Origin: Epithemia pelagica | Taxonomy: Eukaryota > Protista > Bacillariophyta | DNA: 64,000 nucleotides | Direction: 5' to 3' | NCBI GenBank assembly: GCA_946965045.2 | Contig: OX337238.1 | Location: 558,001-622,000, forward strand | Shown here: piece after piece, positions 1 to 22,450 of the stretch | How the letters are laid out: each line of letters begins with the position of its first letter | Numbering within the stretch: position 1 is the first letter of the stretch | Notes under the pieces: model-generated | Told to the model about the DNA's origin: nothing | The model's database searches: none | The model's input: only the letters and a program-made list of their open reading frames with translations | Made by a program: the position numbers and the translations under genes

Positions 1-1474
1 CGGTGTTGTTATGCTCTACCGATCTTCCGTTGAGAGTTGAGAAAGGTTGGGTCCAAAGAAATCCGTTCGACACAGTCATTCACAAAACGTGGAGCCTTGT
101 TGGAGCACGCGGAAGTCTTATTGCCAAATTTTGGTCCACCGGCGCGTTGCTAGAAAATTTCATCTTGCTCACATTCTTCCGCACACCAACCTACCTTGTT
201 AGAGACTGATCGGATCGGAATGCCTTTTTGTCTCTGGTTTCATGACATGACAGTCAATGACTATGTTGTTAAAGGAGAAGCCGAATGCTCAAGATCGAGA
301 TGACGATCTTCCCGTATTGCAAGAGCAGAACAAGAGAACGATGCGGTGCGGCTCGCCGTGTTAGCATCGACGCCCAACTCGCATTCTCATTCTACCAAGC
401 CACACACCACAACCTTCTTGGTCCAACGCCGGCCGAGCACCGTGTTTCTAAGTACCAAAAATGTGATCCTACTGGAGGCATGTCTTCCTAGATATTAGCG
501 ACCACCTTCATCCGTTGAACCTACTTTTCAGTATTGCCCTAATCGGATTAAGAGAACGGACTCGTGCTTTTTACGCTGAAGGATATTGCACAGCAGAAGA
601 GACGAAGTCTCCTCACAAAAAAATCCACGATGGCTGCAATCCGCAATGCTCCATGACCTGTGCACCTCCATGCCTTATCATCCACTTTTGACAGCCGACG
701 CATGTGGGCTGACAACCAGACGTTCTCATGAACGAAACCAACGAATAGCGGCAGCAGGAACATGAGCATGAGCGAGATGAGGGAAGCTGTAAAGTTTAGT
801 CCTTCCATCTCAGCAATGGGCCCTGTATGCACTCCGATGTAGAATCGGGTGACCTAACATTGCAGAGAAACTGAAAGCAGTGTGTCGACTGAGGACGACA
901 TGCAACGGTGGATCTCCTTAGGAGCCAAAAGGATCCGAAACGGTGGGATGAACTGACAAATGATGAAGCGCAACCAAAAACGAATCCGCAATCGAGATCA
1001 GTGAATATTTGCATGTCAATATCTGATCACCCTATTGCTGTGCCTTCGTCGAATCGATCGGGGCAAGCATGGGTGTGGAAGGAGAAAACCTTCCATATAT
1101 TCTCAACACTGCTATACTGGAGGGCCTGGAATTTCGCTTGATCTCTCACTGGTCAATAGGCATTTTCATTAGGCGTCAATGTGCTGTTATCAATGTCTGG
1201 AAGGCATTCAATATCTCTACTGTCTAAAGGTGCGTTAGAAAAGGAGAACTTGAGGCATTCGCGGACGAAGCGGAGTGCATTGTAATAATACAATCCACAC
1301 AGAAAGACTATGGCAGTTGAAAAGGAACAGTTTCTGTTAGATTCTACAATCAGACGTCACTGGTCTATGTCTATCGAGCAAGAAACTGTACACGGTCCAA
1401 GTCATGTTTTGGCCAACGCGAGTAAAAAAGAGTGGATGCGTGTGCATGCTCATGGTTGGTGGATCGTTGTTCAT

Positions 1475-7943: not shown

Positions 7944-9815
7944 ATGATGATGATGGATCATCAGAAGCAGGATCTTTTGCATCAACGAGTTCATCATCAT
8001 CCAACACCGACAACGACAACAAAAACGACGACAAAAACGGGTGACTCTTTGGGTCACCGCCGAACGAATAGCCATGGTTCCAAAACATCGACAATGATTC
8101 ATCATCCACGACAAGCCAAACCATCGTCGCCATCCTCTCAATTGCCAGCGGCGGCGAATCCTTCCCCCATGAACAACAACAAGGCCATGTCTGCGCCCCT
8201 CTTGTCCAAAAAGAAATCGTTCAAACGCCAAAGATATCGTCCCGTCATTGTGATTTTGGCCACAGCTCCCTTTGTGTGTGTCCTCTTGGCCATGTGGAAA
8301 ACAGCGACGCTGTCCACCATTCCCACCCATCATTCGACGCCTCCCCTCCCGGGTGCAAGCATGGGCGAAGGCAGTGATACAGCCGGCGACGATGTCTTTT
8401 CGGTGCTGTGGGGAAATCATCTCAATTATTATACGTCTCAACAACACGTTCCTCGGAGAATCCAAGAAACCTGTGACATGGTGGATCCCGGCTTTGTCTG
8501 TGCCCCCTGGTTGAACCAATCGCAACGAATCATTGTATTCAATACACCCATGGGCCGCTTTCAAACCTGGTCTCTCTTTTATCAAGGACAGGGCTATTTG
8601 GGTGGAGAAGCCTATTGGGCGGCCGGTTTGGCCGCGCTCTTGGAGTCCCTAGACTTTACCATTGTGCGATGGACCAATACGAATAATAACAACAACAACA
8701 ATGACTTTGAGCACAATATTCAATGGGGAAGTGACGCAGCCTTGGAACCTCATGTCTATCGCATTATTTCCGACAATGACGGAGAATATACCAAGGAGGC
8801 CTTGTACAATCCCCACGTCATGTGCAAAGTCCGACAAATGCAATGGTGGTTCAAAGACGATCCACCCCAGGAACATTGCATCTTGTCGCCCTTTCAACAT
8901 CCCACCCAACAAGCCGAACCAGAGCCGGAACAACAGCAACAACAACCGAGTCGGCGCAAATTTCAAGGCATTTTTTTGCCCTTTTTGATTCATTCCCAAG
9001 TCCTTCCGTTACCGGCACGACGAATCCCACGAACCAGCTCCACCACCCAGTCTCGCCAATCACCCGTACCACTACAACAGCAACAACAACCCAACAACCA
9101 ATCCACGACGTCCTCCGTGCCTCGATACAACAAAAATGTCTTTTTGTTGAGCAAACGATGTGACTTTAACGGCAACATTATTCGGGAACTCTCGCTGTTG
9201 GGGTTGCGAATTCATGCCACGTGCTTTATTCGCGACAAGGATTCCAAAACCTTGTCGCCCGACTTGTATCGTCTCATTTACAATCATGGCAAACTCACGC
9301 CCTGGCAATTTCGAAAATTGATGCATCAAATGGACATTGTCATTGGCTTTGGCAAACCAAAGGCATCGCCAACACCCTTTGAAGCCGTGGCCAATGGAGC
9401 CGTCTTTCTCAATCCCCTGTTTCCGGGCAAACACAACAAGAGTCAAAACGAAGGATTGCGAGCCTTGGTAGGAGAACCACATGTCTACCATTATCATTTA
9501 TCGCACCAACCCAATGAAACTGTGCACAATCTGTTACAGGCTGTCCATGCCGCCTTGGAACATCCACCACCGAGACCCGGTCAAGGATACATTCCACCGC
9601 ACTACAGTGTGTGTACCTTGCGAAAATATGTCTGCCAGGTGCTGATTGAAGACAATACACCCTGTGAACGCGGTCAAGTCTGTTTGGCCAGGGGGAGTCA
9701 AGATGCCGGCCTCAACAAGGCCAAGTACAAGGACGATTTGGCCGTCTTGTTATCCAAGCAACAACAAGAAGCACAAACGAATGCTGCTGCAGCAGCAGCA
9801 GCAGCCACACAATAA
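7944..9815 (+). CDS. Glycosyltransferase family 18 (GnT-V/MGAT5-like), type II membrane protein
   Basis: TM anchor PVIVILATAPFVCVLLAMW. GGEAYW...L..L.F resembles GnT-V GGELVQW. IGFGKPKASPTPFEAVANGAVFLNP and SQ...LVGEPHVY resemble GnT-V VGLGFPYEGPAPLEAIANGCAFLNP and SQHPY..IGRPHVW (recalled). Confidence 0.8.
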   Translation: MMMMDHQKQDLLHQRVHHHPTPTTTTKTTTKTGDSLGHRRTNSHGSKTSTMIHHPRQAKPSSPSSQLPAAANPSPMNNNKAMSAPLLSKKKSFKRQRYRPVIVILATAPFVCVLLAMWKTATLSTIPTHHSTPPLPGASMGEGSDTAGDDVFSVLWGNHLNYYTSQQHVPRRIQETCDMVDPGFVCAPWLNQSQRIIVFNTPMGRFQTWSLFYQGQGYLGGEAYWAAGLAALLESLDFTIVRWTNTNNNNNNNDFEHNIQWGSDAALEPHVYRIISDNDGEYTKEALYNPHVMCKVRQMQWWFKDDPPQEHCILSPFQHPTQQAEPEPEQQQQQPSRRKFQGIFLPFLIHSQVLPLPARRIPRTSSTTQSRQSPVPLQQQQQPNNQSTTSSVPRYNKNVFLLSKRCDFNGNIIRELSLLGLRIHATCFIRDKDSKTLSPDLYRLIYNHGKLTPWQFRKLMHQMDIVIGFGKPKASPTPFEAVANGAVFLNPLFPGKHNKSQNEGLRALVGEPHVYHYHLSHQPNETVHNLLQAVHAALEHPPPRPGQGYIPPHYSVCTLRKYVCQVLIEDNTPCERGQVCLARGSQDAGLNKAKYKDDLAVLLSKQQQEAQTNAAAAAAAATQ

Positions 9816-10139
9816 GTAATACTGCTGGAAGGAAACGAAAATCACGGATACCAAAACAAACGAAGCGCACGTACTAATTTGCGTCGCGTGTGACGACAGG
9901 AAGCGTAATGGATCGGCAACACAATCGCTCGGAGCTACAAGGTTCCCCTTTGCGTAGACCATGTCACCAACCAGCAGGAGTAGAATTTCTGATAAGAACT
10001 GTCCTTCGAGAAAGCTTCCTCGACAGAGATCAGGGAAGCTTGGACATTGATCTCGGGGAAACCTACTTTCGGTGAGAAGCCTTATGGTTGAAGATGAAGA
10101 TTGCATGTGGATTACTTTGAAGTTAAGAACCTCTGCACT

Positions 10140-13100
10140 TTACTCTTCAACATTTTCCATTGGTCTCGTCGACGGATCCATTGGTCTCGACTTATCCATT
10201 GGTCTCGACTTATCCATTGGTCTCGACACGGGAGAGAGAGTTTTGGACGGTGCCTCGGTATCGTCGAGCTTGGCCTTGCTCGCTAGTTTCTTCCCTAGAT
10301 TCCCGGTATCTGTTACGATTTCTTTCCCCGCACCCACAAACTCTTCTCCAACATCCATGACTTCTTCACCGACGCCCATTCCGACACCCAACACACCACG
10401 TCGTACTTCGCCCCGGTAGATCTTCTTTTCCTCCTCTCGCCGTTCTTCCTCCTCTTCCGCTTCAATCACCGCGTCCGTTCGCCGTTCATCATGAAACACG
10501 CGGTATTTTGTGAGCCACGGCATGATGGCAACCACCAACAATTGACGCCACGCAACACCGGCGTTGGTCATGAAACGGTCGCCATGCCGCAGCTTCATGA
10601 GATACATTTGAGAGAGTCTTTCAATGTAGGGGTGACGATGAGCGTCGTGAACTAAAAGGTCTTTGATGAAGTGAGTTGGAACATAATCAAACGCATAGCC
10701 TGTCAACGAAGCAATCATTGTGAGCAACGTAGTCCATGGTATCCCAGCATTTGTTAATGTGTCGCGTACCGAAAAGTTGAACATCCTGCAGTATGTCAAG
10801 GTCGGTATAGAAATCGAGAGTAAGATGCATGGCGGTGTGTCAAACGAGAGAAGGGTGCTTGAACTTACCTCGGACAAAAACTTAACATCGATGCGGCCTG
10901 TCCAAAACAAAGCGGCAAACAAGAACTGTGTCACTCGTGCCAACAAAACGGAACCTGCAATACCAATGAACCAACATTCCAGCGCAAGCGAGGATATATT
11001 CGCAGCAAATGGCCGAGTTCTGTAATATGACCGGTATTGAATCATGCGACATGTCATGGTCAAAAGCATCTTCAAGCCTACTGTGATGGAAAGACCAATA
11101 CACCACGCAAGGAAGAGCATCGCTCCTCTCTTCAAACAGAGCGAAAGAGAGGCCTGTAAGGTATCGTCTACAACCCATCCGGCATGGTCCAGCTCGTTCG
11201 TGATCTTACCGAGGTTACGGGCCAGAAAAACAGAAAAATGACTCCACCGACAACGATGTAGAACAACCCTGCACTACCTGCCATTCCATAAACTGCGTTT
11301 CCAATATTCATGTACGTCTGTGGCAACAACAATATATGTGAGATTGGTCATTTTTCGTTTGGAAGTGGGTCGAGCAATTGTCTGCGTACCAGGTCAACCG
11401 CCGTTCGATACGCTTCAAAGTAGGGCGACCCCAACGACGGCAATGCCTTGCAACGGTACTTGAGAATAGTCGACACCGAACTGCAGTTTTCAAAAAGGAA
11501 TGGATAAGAATACAAAGGGATCACTGGGTGACGTCCACGGTCTTCGAAAAACAAGGAAACGTACCTTGGAATGTATAAAAGAGCAATCATGGACATGATG
11601 ACAATAGCCACAACGGCAGCCGGAAAGAACGATTTTCGAACCATTTCACCGGTCGGGAAAATGTTCATTATGGAATCAGGATAGTCGTCTTCAGCTAAGG
11701 AGTTTCGGTAATCATCAGCCTCTTGGGCCAGACGCTCCGCTATCAGAAAGAAGAAAACGGAGAGAAAAAGCCCGGTGATTAGTTGGGAGATCTGAATGAC
11801 GACGAGCCTTGTATTCAACCAAAGCCCTTCTTCGCGGAATAAACTTCCATCAATGAGTCGCCAGAACGTCCAGAGAATCCCTCCCATGTCTACAAACTTT
11901 TCCCCGTAGAGAATGTAATTCCTTGATGTTTGATCCCTTGTTCCCGATAGTTCTTTCTTGCGCGCATTCGAAAGTTTGGCGTTTCGACTCAGTGAGACAT
12001 CCTCCAGCTGATGAAGTTTCAGGGCGTTGGCAACCATGCTGGTAACCTTGCGCCGGGCGGCACGATGCATACGAGATTCCGCGTTCCATGACGACGGTGC
12101 CGCCGTCATACGGAGAGGCTGATGCAATTCGCCAGGATGTTTGTCCTTTGACAAACAAGAAATGATTGCTTGAAATGCAAAAAAGAGAGTGAGAACCATA
12201 CCCAAAGCGAATGCGAATTCTTCTGCCATGGTAGTTGAGAATTTCTGGCCGCTTCGTTCAACTAACCCGTACGGCACACTGCAGTTGTTTTCAAGCACAA
12301 AAGATGAGCATGAGAGATGCAAGCATGGGTTTCCAAGACAACACTAACCAGGACTCACACAGCGTATGTCAACGCAACTCCAACAGCGAAAAGTTGACCT
12401 TTCGGAGTCCGATTGGAAGGGTCATTTCCGAGACTCAAGGGAATCATGAAGAGCAACCCAATACAAGCCAGACATATTCCGAGTGCAGCCCTATTGAGTC
12501 CCATCAAAATACAGAGGAAGTGTGAGTCTCACTCAAAAAAGTAGCACAACGGGCACAATCCGACGATGAAGCAGTACCATGATAGAATTGTTTCGGCCAC
12601 TTGGCACCAAAAGTCGTCGCGAACACAAGTTTTATCCACATCAATAAATTCGTAAATATATCTCCCACTGAAAAGAGTTGGGAACAAAAAGAATGAGAGG
12701 GACCAACCGAGATACCCCGGTAGCAACAGACCCTGTTTTACTTACTACACAACGATGCTGTATGGCGAAAGGCAAACCGAAGGAATTGTTAGACCACACA
12801 CCGGCTCCGCGTAGAAGAACAGCACTCGCACTCTCAAGGACGTACTTTAGAATGAAAAACAATATCGTCAAGGAGACGGACGTCAGTGAAAGTTGAGTGT
12901 CCACCACAAAGTCTAACGCAGATAACTTTGTATTAAAGTCGGGTTTGTCCTGTTTCCGTTTACCCCTCGAAAACCTGGACCCATTCTTTTGGAAAAACCC
13001 ATGCCTTGTCGTCGTCGTCTTTGGATCATTTGGAATGGGTTCCAGTGCCTCTTCTTCATCAATAGGCTGCAACGAGTGTGCCATGCGTTCCGCATCCTTG

Positions 13101-15028
13101 TTGCTGTTATTATTGTCGTCGTCCTTGTCGTCCTTCGTGGTCGTGGCGACCAATTGGGTGGTGTGACAGGGCACACGTTCCCGAAAGACATCGTAAAAAA
13201 AGGTGGACGGCAGATTCTCATTGGTTGGATCCCAGCAGTCGTTTAAATCGTACGAAATGGCCTGAATGAGGGCCTCGAGGTCCAAACACCCCGACGGCGA
13301 CTGTGCCGCCGCCACCATTTCTTGGACCAATTCCCGATTGACGGCTCGCTCAATTTCACCATGGGATACCAGCAAGAGTTGGACCAAGGATTCGTCCACC
13401 ACGGGTGCCTGGACGGTAAAAGACTTTAACAGTGCGGTTCGCGCCATTTCGACAATTTGTCGTGACGAGTATTGGTCCGAATCTTGTTGGTAATTGGGAA
13501 TGTGAAGTTTGCGTCGACCAAATTCCAAGAGACGAGACACGATCAAGAATCGGTTCTTGGGTTTTGGTTCTGGCGCGGGAACATTGTCCTGGGCCTCTTG
13601 TGCCAATCGGGCCAAGGTCGGTGTCATGATGGTGGTCAACACCTGCACCAGGTCGAGAAATTGTGGTACCGTTTCCCGTTCGGGATAGGGAGCCGAGTCG
13701 GACCGGTCCGAACCTGGTTTCCGATGATTGGTTTCTTGTGGTTCCTCCTCGACAGGACCTGATGGTTGTGGAGAAGGGCCATTGGGCTCGGTGGATCCAT
13801 TTTGTTGTTGCAGAGCATTCCAATCATTCTCGTCGTCGTCTGGATCATGGACCGATACTGCAGTACGTTCTGGGTCCATTTCTTCCTCGTCGTCGGCGAC
13901 CGTCTCGACTTGAGGAAAGCCAGTTGCTCGACCCGTCCAGGTTTCCGGTTCGCCTTCACTGGGTTCTGCAAATTGCTGTTGCTGTTGTTGTTCATTAGTT
14001 GTGGATGCGGTTCGGACAGTCTCCAGGGTGGTGGATACGGTAGTTGGGGCCACGACCTGAAGTTCGTGCCGTGCCTGGGACCGTGTCTGGGACGCGGCGG
14101 CACCCACGAACGAGAGTGGAGTGGTACTGAGAATGCTGCGGCTGTGTCGAACCACCTGTTCCTGAAGTTCCTGCGTAATGGCATCTTGCAACAAACGTAA
14201 ACTCCCATCGTCAATGGATCCAAGTTGATTGGCGGCATGCAAGGTACTCAATTGACCCATTAACTTGTTCAATGGCACAGTGTTGTGGTTGTTGTTGTTG
14301 TTGTTGTTGTTGTTGTCATCATGGTCGTCGTCGTTGGCGGTCGACAAGGTGGATGCCGTCAGGGGTATCGACAAAGTGGGACTGGTGGAAGGAGCCCCTT
14401 GGATCCGGTCCCACTCGTCGTGGGACAACGAGTTGGTAGTCACCTGCAAACTCGTTGTAGCATCGTGGTGACGTTCGATCTGGTTTTGTTCCTGGTTGTC
14501 GGTCATGGACTCGTGCGAGTAAGAGGCATGTCCATGCGCGGCATCTGTCGTAGTACTACCACCATGCTCGGTTGCTGCTGCCGCATTCGAGGGGTCGACT
14601 GCAGCGAACGATGGTGGATTGCGAAAGGGGGCTTTTTGAATCCCCTGCACTGCCAGGCTCCACCACTGATCCAATTGATGGTAGGTGCCCTTGGCGGTGG
14701 CGGTGGCAATGGGAAAATATCGTTCGGCGGCACTCGTGGGGCTCTGTGGTTGGCTCGAGTGACGACTGGTTGTCGTTGTCGTGGTCTGGGAGACACCGGG
14801 TTGCTCCGGTACCCCATCGCCTCCTCCCAACGCTTGCACCACTTGGACGGCTTGGTCATGGGAAATGTCCAAGGAATAGCGACTTTTCAAGAGCGACTTG
14901 ACATCTTGCGACGATATCGTGGCATTGGATCGGGTTTCCTTGGACGTTTGATGCAAGGCAATGATATATTCCAATTCCTTGACATCGGCCGCTGCTCCCA
15001 CGGGTTGCGAAAAGCGACACCCAAACAT
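10140..15028 (-). CDS. Calmodulin-like(degenerate)-STRA6/RBP-receptor-like multi-pass membrane protein, copy 1 (~1388 aa)
   Basis: Hand-built exons: 15028-12846, 12757-12746, 12667-12578, 12490-12359, 12278-11565, 11480-11390, 11317-11210, 11129-10869, 10785-10770, 10699-10140. All introns are GT-AG and the total is 4167 nt, in frame. About 9 hydrophobic segments. C-terminal GRID..D....[16 protein letters not shown]...[18 protein letters not shown]. Confidence 0.75.
10156..10227. repeat. 18-nt coding minisatellite (SRPMDK x3-4) at C-terminus of copy 1
   Basis: tccattggtctcga units start at 10156, 10177, 10195 and 10213. Absent from copy 2. Confidence 0.85.
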
Positions 15029-15598
15029 GACACGGACGACAACGACGACGTGCCGATCCAATCCCTGCCTCGTTGGTGTCGACACCCAACACTCACACAC
15101 ACGCCGATTCGGGGGTCGTCCTCAGTGCAGGGTTGGGCCAACCACCTCGAGTAGTAGATACTCCAAGCTATGCACGCCACCGCCACTTTCAATGTTGCTG
15201 CTCGATAGACAGTCCAACCAACGAATGCGTGGATTTCATTTAGTTGTCCTCTCCAAGCTTTCAAAAGAGGGCAAGCTCACACTCTCCTCTGTCGAACCGG
15301 TGGACAAAAATCTCCAATAAATGAGAGACGGTTCCAGGATATTTTTGGGGCCGTTGAACATCAACCACAACGGATGAGATTCTCCCCCTTTTTAAGTCGC
15401 ACATGAGTCGTTTCCGATTACTCCTTCCCGCTAGGGATTGTTGTAGATCGGGAGCTAGAGGTGCGGGACTGATTGAGGTGCGGGACGGAGGTGCGAAAGA
15501 TAGGCGGGGTGGTATCCCCCATAGAGTGGGGGGAGAAGATATCATTCTTTGTTGATGCCGATTGCGCAAAAACCACAAAAAGGTATCACTCTGGCTGG

Positions 15599-17290
15599 AT
15601 GATTGGAACCATGTATGCCATACCGTTCCCGTCGACGATGAATTCTCGTGCCTTGTCTCGTGCCGGCACTGTCACGAATCGAAGAGGTCCTTTCTCCGTG
15701 GTGGTGGCGGTTCGTTCCCTAATGATAATGATGATGATGATGATGGTGGTCTGTCATGCCAACCAGCAGGCCCCCACCAACAACAACAAGAAGGAGCCGC
15801 AAGCAACCACAACGCCCACCCTGGATGCTCCTCGTTATCATCGTCGGCGATTCCCTCGATTTCATGTGTTGGGACCCGTCATTACCATGACACTCAAAGA
15901 TCCCTCTGCTTCCAACACGAACAATAACAACCAACAAGCCATGTCGTCCCCATCCGTGTCAACGGCGACAACGATTCCAGACAAGAAGAAGAAGAACAAA
16001 CATCATCAACAACAACAAGTATCTCCGCATCGATCGGGGTATTATCCTCCCGCCACCATTCCCACCACGTCCTCCTCCTCCGTTCGGGTGTCGGATTCGG
16101 CTCCGTCCTTGGTCATTCTCAAAACCTTGATATCCTCCATTCGTCCCAAAGCCACCTGGAGTCTGGAATGGGTCCCAACCAAGCAGCAGCAACAAGAGGA
16201 TGCGTTTCCTGCGAATACAAGCACGACCAACTCCCAGGACGCATCCCAATCATCCTCATCAACAACCAAGGGAGGAACCGCTGCCACTCCTTCCAAATCA
16301 TCACAACCGCCCAAGCAGCCAGCAGAACCACAACCACAACCAAAAGAACGTTCTCGAACCTGGATGCCCACCCTGGAACAGGTTTACGCCAATCTTACCT
16401 ACGAGTATCCCTCCCTCCCCTATTTTGCCCCCACGGACGTTCAAACTACGTGTCACTTTCGGACCCGGGTGGGCGACCTGTGGTTCCAACCCCGTTGGAA
16501 TCTGGCGACACACGAAACGGAATGGGATGTGTCGGTGTCACGAGGGACGTCATTTGTTCTCACGCGATTGGGGGGTCGTCGTCGTCCGTGGAGCGAGTCG
16601 GTGGACGGGACGGGACACGATTCTTTCGACCACGAGGCATCCTCCGTGCCCTTGCCCTGGATCCCTCGACTGTCTCTCAAATCCTTGGTGGGATCCTTTA
16701 CCGTGGCCCTCCCCGACAACAAGGCCCTTCATTCCATTCGATTCCGTCCCCAAATTGACTTTACCTCGTCCTACGCCGATGTATCCTGTCAAGTCCATGC
16801 CTCGTGTGGACCCCACCCACGGGACGACAACGACAATGACGACCACCATTGTCCACCGACCCAAGCCATTTTGAATTTGGACTACACCAATCCCACCTTG
16901 ACCGTCGTTCATCCCCTCAATGCATGGAACACGGTATCGCCTTCGATTGCCATTTATACCGCTCGCATCACCTATCAATGGCATGTCAAATTGACCCCCG
17001 ATGGTTCCTCCTCCCTTACCACCAAAATTGATCCCCTGGATGCCATTACCATGACCTGGACCGATCCCTGTCAATTGGGAGGAGGATCGTGGGTGGCCGA
17101 TGTGCGATTGCCCATTGGTGGTTCGTTGGCCGCCTGGCAATCACCGGCGGCTGGACCACACGGGTCGTCGTCGTCGTCGTCCTGGGACGCATGGCCCACT
17201 GCCGACAGTGGTGGTGGGGGAGGTCGCGTGAGTGCGCTGGCCACGGCCTTGACGGCCGATATTCGAATTCGACGACAATTCAAGTTTTAG
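15599..17290 (+). CDS. Signal-peptide protein with beta-strand-rich C-terminal domain (candidate beta-barrel)
   Basis: Hydrophobic VVVAVRSLMIMMMMMMVVCHA segment, a disordered linker, then alternating strands (LWFQPRWNL, EWDVSVSRG, ITYQWHVKL, ITMTWTDP, WVADVRLP) ending in DIRIRRQFKF. Start could be 15599, 15611 or 15638. Confidence 0.7.
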   Translation: MIGTMYAIPFPSTMNSRALSRAGTVTNRRGPFSVVVAVRSLMIMMMMMMVVCHANQQAPTNNNKKEPQATTTPTLDAPRYHRRRFPRFHVLGPVITMTLKDPSASNTNNNNQQAMSSPSVSTATTIPDKKKKNKHHQQQQVSPHRSGYYPPATIPTTSSSSVRVSDSAPSLVILKTLISSIRPKATWSLEWVPTKQQQQEDAFPANTSTTNSQDASQSSSSTTKGGTAATPSKSSQPPKQPAEPQPQPKERSRTWMPTLEQVYANLTYEYPSLPYFAPTDVQTTCHFRTRVGDLWFQPRWNLATHETEWDVSVSRGTSFVLTRLGGRRRPWSESVDGTGHDSFDHEASSVPLPWIPRLSLKSLVGSFTVALPDNKALHSIRFRPQIDFTSSYADVSCQVHASCGPHPRDDNDNDDHHCPPTQAILNLDYTNPTLTVVHPLNAWNTVSPSIAIYTARITYQWHVKLTPDGSSSLTTKIDPLDAITMTWTDPCQLGGGSWVADVRLPIGGSLAAWQSPAAGPHGSSSSSSWDAWPTADSGGGGGRVSALATALTADIRIRRQFKF

Positions 17291-17793
17291 CACACGCATC
17301 TCTCCAAACTTCACCTACTACATACTACAACGCCCTGTATGCTGGAAAAGTGCAGAAACTTTTGTCTTACAATAATGAGCGAGGAGAGCTATTACAACGA
17401 TATATCCCATTCTAGAATGATATAACAACCACAGACGGCAAGGCAACGGGGGATGTCATTGTCGAGAGTGGGGTTGTTCCGTATACTACTCGTATCCCGT
17501 TCCACTCCAAGCAATAGGATTTAATTGCAAGATATTCCGGTGATGAGGCTCTGTCATGGCCAAAGGTTGTTTTCATCACTACTTTCAGGGGTGTACAATA
17601 CACTTTACTTTAACCAAGATACGAGCAGTGGAATACGTCTCACTCTTTTCTAAAGTCGAAGCAATACGTCATATTATAGAATCTCGACGAAATGGAGAAG
17701 CTCGGTCATACCAACGTGACGTAGAAATGTTTGTCGAAACAAAGAGAGCGATACATGCGAGACTGTCGAGGTCAATCTCGGACAACCAAGGAT

Positions 17794-20700
17794 TCACTTT
17801 TGTGTTGTTCCAGGAGCATTGTGGGAAGCCTCTGTGACCTCGTTTTCATCTTCTATATGGTCGCTGTGCTCATGGATTGGGAATGTTCCCAGAGACCGAA
17901 CCGCTTCCGTGGTCATTTGGGCGCCATTCTTGACCATTTTTCCCATTTCGTCCGCAATGTCGGTACCGGCACCGTAGAGTTCTTCTCCCACCTCCACAAC
18001 TTCTTGCGCCACTTCGTGGCCCACTTCTGTGACTCCGCCTTGCATCTGTTTGACACCTCGATATGGGTCCTGTTCATCCTCTTCTCGTTCCACCTCGAAT
18101 TCGGCTTCGAATTCGGCCGCGACGCGACGTTCGTCCAGAAAGACACGGTATTTGGTCAGCCACGGCATGATGGCCAGAATGAGCAATTGTCTCCACGCCG
18201 TGCATGCGTTGTTGACAAATTTGTCACCGTGTCGCAGCTGCATCAAGTACATTTGGGTGAGCTGTTCAATGTACGGATGACGATGAGCCTCATGCACCAG
18301 CAAGTCCTTGAAAAAGTGGTCCGGAACCAAATCAAACCCGTACCCAAAGAGAACCACATCTCGCGATAAGTACGGGACATCAATCCGTCCCACCCAAAAC
18401 AGCGCCGCGGCCAGAAATTGGGTCACACGAGCAATCAGGACGGACCCGGCGAGACCAATGTACCATACTTCGCTGGCCAGTCCGGATACTCGGGCAGCAG
18501 CAGGTTTGATTCTATAGTAGGCCCGATACTGGGCCTTGCGGCAAGCACCGGTCACAAGCATCTTGATTCCGATGGTGATACTCAATCCGATACCCCATGC
18601 GGTGATCAAAAGGGCGATATCCTGGTGACACACAGTGTGAGAACAAGATCAAGACAAGACGTGTCAAACCAATCTTTTGTCAATCGTACCTGTGTGTAGG
18701 GCCACACAAACAAGAAAATGATTAGGCCCACGACAAAATAGACCAGGAGTGCGCTTCCCAACAATCCATAGATTGCATTGGCTGTGTTCATGTAGGTCTG
18801 TGTATATTATGTGAGCGGATGAATTGTGACCACAACAACACAAACACTTTTTAGTACCGTACCATATCAACGCCCTTGCGGAATCGTTGAAAGTAGGGCG
18901 AACCCAAGGATGGCAACAGTTTCCCTCGGTATTTCAAGACAGTTGCCATCGAACTGATTAGAGAATAAACGATGAGGCAATGGCATCAAGTGAATAACAA
19001 GGCTAAACATGACTTGGAGGGCCCCAGCAGGTTCACAACGTACCTTGGAACGTAGACTATAATGAGAAATACCTTGACGACCAATGCCACAAAGGTTGCT
19101 GGGATGAACGCAGTTTCAATCATCTCTCCCGTTGGGAAAATGTCCATCACCCAATCAGGAAGGTCGACATCGGATTCCAAGTCTTCTCGAAAGTCATCCG
19201 CAATCTGAGCAAGCCTGACAGTCGCTACGAAAAACAGAGCAAACCCAACGGCGCTCATTCCAACCTGCGTCACCTGGATAACCCACAGCCTGGTGCTAAT
19301 CCACAGCCCTTCCTCGTAGAACAGGCTTCCATCGCAAGCCTTCCAAAACGTCCAGATAATTCCACCAACTTCCTCTTTGGTTTCACCATGAGTGACAAAG
19401 TTTCGAGACGTCTCGTCACGGGTATGTGCCAAGGCCATTTTCGTGGATAAGGTGAGATTCTGTTCGGTATGGACGGCAGATCCCAACTCGTCCGATTTAT
19501 GAAGTCGCAATGCATTTGTGACAATCTTGTTAATTTTGAATTGGGCAGCTCGATAAACTCGGGTTTCCGCATCCCAGGATGTGGACGTGGTCAAGAACTG
19601 TAGAAACTTGGGCAGTTTGTGCGGATGGTCTCGGTCGACAAACAACATGACAGTACCTTGAAGCAAAAACATGAACGCCAGAGCACAGCCCACGGCAAGC
19701 GTCAGATTCTGCAGCACACCATAAAACTGATAGTCCAAGTCCGATTTCACGTCCGAACTTCTGACGACATCATCCAGATTTCTCTGTACCCAGTTCACGA
19801 TACAATATGGAACGCTACAACCACAAGACAAGTTGAGTCGTTTGGTGCATCATTGCGGGCTTTGCAACGTAAGTGGCACTTACAGAGTATTGATCATGGT
19901 AAAGGTGAACGCAAAGCCTTGTCTTCGTGCGGATTGGTCGGCGGGATTGTTTCCAACACTAATCGGTAGGATATGAAACATGCCCACTGCAATGAGCAAA
20001 CAGGCAATGATCAACCTGTTCACAGTATATAATATGGTAAGAGGTCCATATACAAAACGCCATGGGAGAGACCATGGAGGCTGGCAACCACGTACCACGA
20101 ATACACAGTTTCCGAAATCATGCACCAGTACGTAGACGATGCCGAACACTGTCGGTCAAAGACCTGGGACTTGATGAAAATACCGGCGCTATCCAACAAA
20201 GTCAGGTTGTGAGTCGGAACGTCAGATATCACAATGCCGGGGGGAAGATGAGATGTACTTACTACACAGTGGCGCTGGTCGTTTGGAAAGAACAATGAAA
20301 AAGAAGAACCAAAACGTTCAAAAAGAGCAGCACACACAGTTGAGGTCCAAACTGATATAAACATCCAAAATGCAATAACATCATCGACACACTCTGTCGT
20401 CGTCGTCATCTTACATGAGAATATAGGAAACCCAAATGAGAGTGTACACAATCAGCGAGATGGAGAGATCAATGACCATATCAATCCCTAAAAAGGCTGT
20501 GGAAAACTCCAGTTTGTCGTGTCTGCAGGAATAGTAAATGGGAAATAAGCATCGGCAAACTCTACTCCACAGGGATGGCTTGTCCGTTTCGGGTTCCTCC
20601 GGTTCGGCTTGCGGCGTCGTAGGATCGCCCTCGTCCCGACTTGGTTCTCCCGGAGCTTCCACCTGTTGTGGCTGGTCGGCACGTTCTTCTGGTACATTTG

Positions 20701-22450
20701 CATGATTCTCCCGCGGGACTTTCTCAACACCTTCCTTGTTGTTGTTTGGTGCGTCGTTGTCATCTTCCTTTTGGAGCTTGGTCTTGATACTGGGAAGAGG
20801 AACCCCAAAGACATCGTAAAAAAAGGTGGTGGGTGTATCGGTACAGGTGGGATCCCACGCGGAGAGATCGGACGAAATGGCCCGGAGGAGGGAGGTTTCA
20901 TCAAACCGTCCCGAGGGTGATTGGGCCACCTGGACCATTTCGCGAACCAGTGTCAGGTCATTGGCCCGTTCAATCTCTCCATTCACCAACAAGAACAATT
21001 GCACCAAGGTTTCATCCAAGACGGGAGCTTCCTCTCCCGGAATGGTTTTCAAGAGCGCTTGTCGACCCATGTCCAATACCTCGTGGGCCGAAAACGACGG
21101 TAGGTCGTCGTCCTGGTCCAGATGGAGTTTGCGTCGACCATAGGCCACAAATCGGTTCTGGAGTTTACCCCACAAACCAGGCTCCTCCTCGTCCTCCTCT
21201 TTGGGCAGTGTGGATTCGGGTTGCTGCTCCGCCTCGTCGGCTTCGTCGGTTCCAATTTCTGGTGACGTCGTCGTCGTGGTTTTGGTGGTATTCGTCCTCG
21301 TCTCGTATGCCAGACGGGCAAATTTGGGGATCAACATGGTGGAAAGAATTTGCACGAGATCCAAATACTCGGGAAGAAGCTCGGAATCCTCTCGATGCCT
21401 AGTAGGTTCGTCGTCGGGTGGTGGGTCCACTTCCTCCTCCTCCTTGTCGTCGTTGTTGGTTGGGGGAGACGACTCAAAGAATACCGATGGTTGAACGTGT
21501 GGCAGTTCGTCTCGGTGGCTATCATCGGTTTGCGTGGATTGCGTCCAGGTAAAATCGGGGACCACATCCGAGACTTCGACTACGGATGATTTTGCATGGG
21601 ACGACTCGACAAAGGTAATTTCCATGGTTTCCGTTGTCGTCGGTTCACTCTTTTGAGTATGGTTCCTTGTGCGAGGAGGAGATGCGTCGTCATCGTTAGC
21701 CGCCGCCGCCAAGTGTTGGGCCGATTGGGTCTTTTCCACAACTCGTGCGCGTAACTCGGCCGCCACATCCTTGGTCAGCGTTGCCATGTGATGATCCTGA
21801 CTGTGGGTCTTGCCGCCAGGAGGATGACGGTTCAGGGCATGAAGTCGCCGCAATCGTTTCATGGTACTGGACATGGCATGAGACGTGGCCGTCGACAGTC
21901 GATCCAGTTTGGTCGTTGTTGTTGTGGTGGGATGAGTGGCGTTTGCGGCTGTGAAGGATTCGCCTTGCAGTATTTCATTCGAGTGAGAGGGTCGTGATGG
22001 TGATGGTGCTTCCATCAAGGAGGTTCCTTGCTCGCGTGACATTTCTCGTGACAATAATTCGGAGCCTTCTCCTCCTCCTGTCGATTCCCGAGAAGGAGTG
22101 TGATGATGATGAAAGACGGACTGAATGCCATCGACAGCCTGGTGCATCAAATGGCTCAGTTTCTTGGAATGACTGCACGATTTGGACCGTGCATCGTCGT
22201 CGTCATCATCCAAAGGGTAAATCCGATCCATGGATGTGTCTCCCCCACCCAAACGTCGCACCAACTCAATGGCCTGCTCATGAGAAATGGTGAGGGAATG
22301 ACGACTCTGGAGCAAGGCCACAATATCCATGGAAGATACCGTCGCGTTGGCACGAGTTTCCTCCGACGTTTGTTGCAAGGCAATCACATATTCCAGTTCC
22401 TTCACGTCCGCGCCTGCGCCCACCGATCGCTCAAAGCGAAGACCCGACAT
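17794..22450 (-). CDS. Calmodulin-like(degenerate)-STRA6/RBP-receptor-like multi-pass membrane protein, copy 2 (~1356 aa)
   Basis: Exons: 22450-20415, 20274-20263, 20188-20096, 20015-19884, 19814-19044, 18953-18863, 18797-18690, 18621-17794; total 4071 nt, in frame. Exons of 12, 132, 91 and 108 nt match copy 1 in length and phase. Confidence 0.78.

Follow-up and report, generated by a model that had tools for sequence, protein, structure and literature searches.

Can a diatom membrane protein carry, within its own chain, the kind of calmodulin partner that STRA6 binds as a free protein? STRA6 has been described as animal-specific (PMC5977736), it is said to resemble no other transporter, channel or receptor in sequence (PMC7154012), and the role of its tightly bound calmodulin has been called enigmatic (PMC5954442). 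The question is raised by a stretch of 64,000 nucleotides (nt) from Epithemia pelagica (assembly GCA_946965045.2, contig OX337238.1, positions 558,001-622,000, forward strand), referred to here as the window and numbered from its first letter. Two long paralogs, genes A and B, are found on its minus strand, with a plus-strand open reading frame (ORF) between them. On balance, our analysis favors the reading in which each gene encodes one chain made of a STRA6-like membrane domain and a built-in calmodulin-like module.

The first step was to establish that each gene is a single spliced unit. Exon models were built for A and B from reading frames and splice signals. Gene A (15028..10140, minus strand) has ten exons (15028..12846, 12757..12746, 12667..12578, 12490..12359, 12278..11565, 11480..11390, 11317..11210, 11129..10869, 10785..10770 and 10699..10140, the last including the stop) and encodes 1388 amino acids (aa). 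Gene B (22450..17794, minus strand), which was built by homology to A, has eight exons (22450..20415, 20274..20263, 20188..20096, 20015..19884, 19814..19044, 18953..18863, 18797..18690 and 18621..17794, the last including the stop) and encodes 1356 aa. Both coding sequences are open, and all 16 introns are bounded by GT..AG and measure 65-140 nt. The gene structure is established for both genes, the model of B having homology and canonical splice sites as its only basis.

Evidence from reads covers gene A. Four public sequencing runs contain its DNA, and these were compared with the window over 10100-15300 (5,201 letters). Three of them gave contiguous genomic contigs, and the fourth, X4, gave spliced, RNA-like contigs with joints at nine of the nine introns. 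Between the joint sides 12846 and 12667 (shorter side 91 letters), the X4 contig carries exactly the letters of the 12-nt microexon 12757..12746, which completes the end of transmembrane (TM) helix 1 (ILN-IVVY). This joint ties the N-terminal ORF to the membrane exons; thus, the two parts of gene A, for which a preliminary description of the locus had left room for separate transcripts, are spliced together in one RNA-like contig. The 16-nt microexon 10785..10770 was likewise found in X4, between 10868 and 10700. In gene B, the counterpart of the 12-nt microexon (20274..20263, minus strand) is flanked by AG/GT. The two spliced paralogs of the preliminary description, with open reading frames and canonical introns, were therefore borne out.

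Some minor differences were also seen among the runs. In one low-depth X4 contig (depth 24.8; the main form has 59), position 12359 is connected to 12170 through ten letters (12278..12269). This implies a 98-nt skip inside exon 5 of A with non-canonical ends (side 20), for which misassembly or a rare isoform is the probable cause. A 12-letter insertion, GACAACGACGAT, is present at 15037, just upstream of the ATG of A, in runs X3 and X4. Run X3 also has many substitutions over 10421-12884, and X2 and X4 bear others; all of this looks like variation between strains or alleles.

Genes A and B belong to a large diatom family. They share 45% identity overall and 50% in the membrane region, and a hidden Markov model (HMM) of the family matches both from end to end (1225.7 bits for A, 1260 bits for B). 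When a 15-member profile was searched against 1.84 billion proteins, 2670 representatives (counted at 50% identity) were returned at E<=1e-3, with 991 at E<=1e-30. The organism named by the source was a diatom in every case, and both centrics and pennates were represented. Full-length relatives with both halves occur in Epithemia (two genes on one contig), Entomoneis, Amphiprora, Fistulifera and Seminavis, and complete MMETSP transcripts with both halves are available from Ditylum, Corethron, Detonula and Dactyliosolen. The only fetched proteins with a complete membrane region and no N-terminal module are those in which the membrane region starts near residue 1, which suggests that they are truncated calls. 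A and B are established members of the family, throughout which the fusion occurs. Where members have been given names, these are "hypothetical", "uncharacterized" or an automatic label, and the protein database entries for A and B (P0001 and P0009) consist of the first exons only.

The two genes seem to have been separate for some time. The nearest relative of A is Epithemia P0003 (68% identity over the membrane region) and that of B is P0015 (66%), a pairing which indicates that the duplication took place before these two diatoms separated. P0003 and P0015 are encoded on one Epithemia contig, with locus tags ACA910_003808 and ACA910_003805, three apart, and the neighboring arrangement of the orthologs seems to be conserved.

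The likeness to STRA6 lies in the membrane half. In the membrane region of gene A (10899..12886, minus strand), eight TM helices are predicted within aa 715-1133. They are followed by a ninth hydrophobic helix, which is long (aa 1155-1187; 10997..10899, minus strand), carries an invariant Arg and is read as re-entrant or intramembrane. A full-length structure model was made for a relative, P0014 (1053 aa), from a 15-sequence alignment (predicted template modeling score, pTM, 0.67), and its membrane helices mostly scored 70-90 in the predicted local distance difference test (pLDDT). The model was compared with 48,161 representative PDB chains using VIA-align, which is independent of Foldseek. 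The first match was 5sy1_B, from the zebrafish STRA6-calmodulin structure (5SY1; Pfam family PF14752), with Z 13.3 over 361 residues (root-mean-square deviation, rmsd, 5.3 Å; model residues 421-973 against chain residues 63-574). The runner-up had Z 8.9 with 111 residues aligned, and by rank 50 Z was down to 7.0. STRA6 thus leads by 4.4 Z units, with three times as many residues aligned and the whole domain covered.

Features from the ESM protein language model pointed to the same neighbor. With residues 650-1260 of P0003 as the query, 19 PF14752 clusters came out on top (score 0.93; 211-213 of 256 features in common). When the window exon 17797-18621 (exon 8 of B) was used, PF14752 clusters were again nearest (0.90; 202 of 256 features), and the matches included a diatom-dominated cluster of which 52% of the members carry PF14752. 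For both queries, all ten of the best family-bearing matches were PF14752. Taken together, these comparisons make it quite probable, though not proven, that the membrane half is a remote homolog of STRA6. Among AlphaFold DB clusters, two uncharacterized proteins from outside the family, A0A7D9EE42 and A0A815AHX9, matched the membrane domain (Foldseek probability 1.00 and 0.96, with weak E values of 0.028 and 0.015, respectively). Judging by their accession series, both may be animal proteins, possibly cnidarian and rotifer, and they could be bridges to STRA6.

Topology was then considered. About nine hydrophobic segments per gene had been reported in the preliminary description, and nine were found in both genes by hydropathy, a count that agrees with the DSSP assignment of the P0014 model. 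Loop charge (K+R minus D+E, averaged over the family) alternates along the chain. The odd-numbered loops have a negative net charge, together with Cys and NxS/T sites: L1 (-1.4) has about two conserved Cys, L3 has -1.5, and L5 (-8.9) has Cys and NxS/T sites, with long Cys-rich inserts in centrics. The even-numbered loops and the C-terminal tail are net positive (L2 +1.0, L4 +4.4, L6 +2.6, L8 +4.5, tail +3.2). Since L8 and the tail, the two flanks of the ninth hydrophobic helix, are both positive, this helix is best read as re-entrant. Four helices precede the large cytosolic loop, which places the N-terminus in the cytosol; the N-terminal flank of gene A has eight K/R versus four D/E. Based on these sequence features, the family appears to have eight TM helices plus a re-entrant helix, with both termini cytosolic. 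STRA6, in contrast, has nine TM helices and an intramembrane helix per protomer (PMC7154012). In the latter, a conserved Arg, R511, pairs with D539 (PMC5954442). The family therefore seems to be without one N-terminal helix of STRA6, and this difference would put the N-terminal module on the same side of the membrane as the C-terminal helices. Otherwise, the elements follow each other as they do in STRA6: the large cytosolic loop comes first, then four TM helices, the long helix with its conserved Arg and finally the cytosolic helices.

The outward loop between TM5 and TM6 (aa 987-1023 in gene A) differs among diatoms. It holds a Cys-rich insert of 100-200 aa with NxS/T sites in centrics (P0011, P0021) and is about 33 aa long in pennates. 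By helix order it matches the loop of STRA6 that binds retinol-binding protein, and it may thus be a site for binding a ligand or partner. No partner corresponding to retinol-binding protein is known from diatoms.

We next turned to the N-terminal half. The module spans aa 1-618 in gene A (13175..15028, minus strand), where the EF3/EF4 lobe ends at 13175, and aa 1-551 in gene B (20798..22450, minus strand). Alignment of the gene A module with 72 other family N-modules showed that the four blocks which the preliminary description had picked out in the two paralogs (KELEY, LDLVQ, GE.ERA and SPSG..D) are conserved across the 73 members. The EF1 block lies at 14980..14876 in A and 22402..22298 in B, and the exit helix of EF2 at 13660..13619 in A (FLDLVQ) and 21367..21326 in B (YLDLVQ), all on the minus strand. 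Pennate members, with A and B among them, carry a low-complexity insert of 100-400 aa (about 380 aa in A) that interrupts loop 2. The compact module of a centric relative, P0011 (residues 1-262), was used for structure modeling (pLDDT 80.5, pTM 0.70).

Matches to this model were almost exclusively EF-hand proteins. Nearly all of the top 50 Foldseek matches in the PDB were calmodulin, centrin or troponin C, with whole chains covered, and about 45 of the top 50 VIA-align matches were EF-hand proteins. The latter aligned with the C-lobe (residues 148-232; Z 4-6, rmsd about 3 Å), the N-lobe (4-93; Z 4.0-4.3) or both lobes (34-234). In addition, EF-hand_7 was the most recurrent sub-threshold Pfam match, seen in 4 of the 73 members (best E 0.0044), and one family member is labeled in AlphaFold DB as an EF-hand domain-containing protein. 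In the modeled relative, then, the N-module is predicted to be a two-lobed, four-EF-hand fold of the calmodulin type, and the conserved blocks fold in the model as the paired EF-hands that had been anticipated. No Pfam EF-hand match above threshold was found among the 73 members (EF-hand_7 reached 17.5 bits in P0011, with a cut-off of 30), and the N-module profile reached calmodulin among PDB sequences at E 0.51 only.

The module also differs from calmodulin, troponin C and centrin in its loops. With the modeled beta residue taken as loop position 8, and the canonical Ca2+ loop defined as D-x-[DNS]-x-[DNSG]-...-[ED], canonical ligand sets were absent from loops 1-3 in all 73 members and present in loop 4 of a single member. 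The loss of Ca2+ ligands that had been claimed for the two genes is thus a property of the whole family. Loop 1 has Arg at position 3 in 57 of the 73 members, A and B included, while its EF-hand shape is kept ([DN] at position 5, [GA] at 6, [IV] at 8 and D at 12); in gene B it reads ETRANATVSSMD. Loop 2 of centrics keeps acidic residues at positions 3, 5, 9 and 12, as in P0011 (GEDEDDCLDLCE). Unlike the free EF-hand proteins, moreover, the diatom module is fused to a membrane protein, and in pennates its second loop is interrupted by the disordered insert.

Calcium-dependent protein kinases (CDPKs) of plants and apicomplexans offer a useful analogy, with no homology claimed, in that they too carry in cis a calmodulin-like domain of the kind that acts elsewhere as a free partner. 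One such domain, 3khe_B, aligned over both lobes of the N-module in VIA-align (124 residues). The EF-hands of CDPKs bind Ca2+ and come after the catalytic domain, whereas the diatom module has degenerate loops and precedes the membrane domain.

If the module takes the place of calmodulin, it would act on the C-terminal helices. They are cytosolic by prediction and fall in 10500..10898 of gene A and 18145..18390 of gene B (both minus strand), with invariant columns and pLDDT 87-91 in the model of the relative. Within them are GRID (10898..10887 in A, 18390..18379 in B), AHRHPYIE (10643..10620 and 18288..18265) and the W..MPWL helix (10553..10500 and 18198..18145), the last being a candidate counterpart of CaMBP2 of STRA6. 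Both genes carry AWRQLL-x4-MPWLTKYR at this point, and the end motifs form invariant or near-invariant columns in the 15-member alignment; hence, the series GRID...AHRHPYIE...AW-x8-MPWLTKYR noted in the two paralogs holds well beyond them. The zebrafish CaMBP2 peptide, as published, has a W-x8-[MN]P-x-L spacing (PMC7154012), and the family helix shares it. The identity of W-to-P spacing that had been noted for STRA6 was therefore confirmed as spacing, and the corresponding alignment did not reach significance, as discussed below.

The full-length P0014 model gives a view of how the two ends may meet. EF-hand structures align with it over 271..994 and 273..998 (87-88 residues), a range that includes both the EF3/4 lobe and the W..P helix, whereas the isolated lobe aligns over 65-72 residues only. 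Both the lobe and the helix have pLDDT 83-91. The combined alignment and the high pLDDT of both elements favor a contact between lobe and helix, and from the model we judge the chances that the N-module docks in cis on the C-terminal helix to be evenly balanced.

A different role for the module has to be weighed at this point. The membrane domain could be STRA6-like while the N-module acts elsewhere, as a non-canonical sensor of Ca2+ or another ion, as a domain for dimerization or partner binding, or through its disordered insert, with free calmodulin or nothing on the C-terminal helices. The support for docking is indirect only, the acidic residues kept in loop 2 of centrics would suit an ion sensor, and the long inserts of pennates suggest additional roles. 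Nevertheless, the fusion has been kept throughout the family, both ends of the chain are predicted to be cytosolic, and the EF-hand alignment just described, in elements modeled with high confidence, spans the lobe and helix that docking would bring together. We consider this alternative unlikely, although it is the stronger of the two that we have weighed.

Several results count against a STRA6-like membrane domain with a built-in calmodulin-like module. No PF14752 match was obtained by hmmscan with the window ORF pieces (unspliced) and five full-length relatives at E<=1, or, at the looser limit of E<=10, with 10 C-terminal fragments and the membrane regions of 62 members; over these 62 regions and 23 other sequences searched, at E up to 10, the HMMER comparison called for in the preliminary description never gave PF14752. 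Neither the full-length nor the membrane-only (62-sequence) family profile reached 5SY1 among PDB sequences at E<=10, the N-module profile did not return STRA6 either, and a word-indexed protein search with the membrane profile returned no match bearing a precomputed PF14752 annotation. The Foldseek comparison that had been proposed did not return STRA6 either: searches of the PDB and Swiss-Prot models, and an Atlas shape search with the P0014 model, gave low-TM noise. According to the guidance for VIA-align, unrelated helical proteins can reach Z ~13, and a best Z of ~14 can arise by chance. The structure matches come from models of the relatives P0014 and P0011, not from the window proteins, and those of the N-module have modest scores (Foldseek E 0.09-0.85, VIA-align Z 4-6). 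The TM count and the orientation of the N-terminus are unlike those of STRA6, whose N-terminus is reportedly extracellular. The CaMBP2 peptide had its best local alignment on the W..MPWL helix in three of six family proteins and elsewhere in A and B, where 1854 and 1800 of 2000 shuffles, respectively, reached the score; against the family HMM, it was not significant. The likeness of the C-terminal motif is real, yet by itself it appears to be no more than chance gives. Since sequence profiles, Foldseek and the motif alignment lend no support to STRA6, homology rests on one structural aligner and on language-model features. The STRA6-like membrane region of the preliminary description was accordingly upheld by the structural match, and it found no backing from the PF14752 profile or from Foldseek.

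The lack of profile and Foldseek matches, the caution on Z, the motif alignment and the TM count also speak for a diatom-specific membrane domain, unrelated to STRA6 and similar to it through helix number and packing, with the EF-hand module as an ordinary regulatory domain; we think this improbable, since STRA6 was the sole top match of the 48,161 chains, far ahead of the next and over the whole domain, two independent language-model queries agreed on PF14752, and the order of elements is that of STRA6.

Returning to the reading that we favor, the proposed arrangement is a single polypeptide in which a cytosolic two-lobed EF-hand module is followed by a STRA6-like membrane domain. The latter would have two sets of four TM helices, separated by a large basic cytosolic loop, and after them a long re-entrant helix with the invariant Arg and the conserved cytosolic helices. 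STRA6 and the diatom proteins would then both associate with a calmodulin-type module, but STRA6 uses free calmodulin, whereas the partner in the diatom proteins belongs to their own chain and has no canonical Ca2+ ligands. We predict that the built-in module takes the place of free calmodulin and clamps the C-terminal helices permanently, without canonical Ca2+ switching. The membrane domain may in turn offer a small lipophilic molecule a route that connects the membrane with the exterior or with the lumen of an organelle, in the way that STRA6 does for retinol. We take the most likely mechanism to be a route of this kind that is clamped by the calmodulin-like module and independent of Ca2+, a prediction that we make with moderate confidence. 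The larger claim, that the family is a true ancient homolog of STRA6 whose calmodulin partner was fused in cis and made Ca2+-independent, is more tentative, and we give it somewhat less than even weight.

Although STRA6 is known from animals and the present family from diatoms, a true homology would mean that the partnership of STRA6 and calmodulin predates animals or has moved between lineages. STRA6-type proteins would also be a means by which eukaryotes in general move small lipophilic molecules across membranes, not a vertebrate vitamin-A specialty, and the family would place the evolution of the STRA6 fold in a frame wider than the animals. As a STRA6-calmodulin complex that occurs naturally in one chain, such proteins could serve studies of structure and mechanism. 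They would further provide a lead to a system for transport or sensing of lipophilic molecules in major marine primary producers. A literature search turned up no publication that describes STRA6-like proteins from diatoms. PF14752 seems, however, to be attached to diatom proteins in some database entries, and automatic annotation may thus already hold the idea in latent form.

Two other ORFs lie close to the genes, both on the plus strand. The one between A and B, on the strand opposite to them (15473-17290), encodes 605 aa of low complexity with no Pfam match. The other, which comes before gene A in window numbering (7944-9815), encodes 623 aa and matches Glyco_transf_18 (PF15024) over residues 421-503 (E 1e-12, 47.9 bits).

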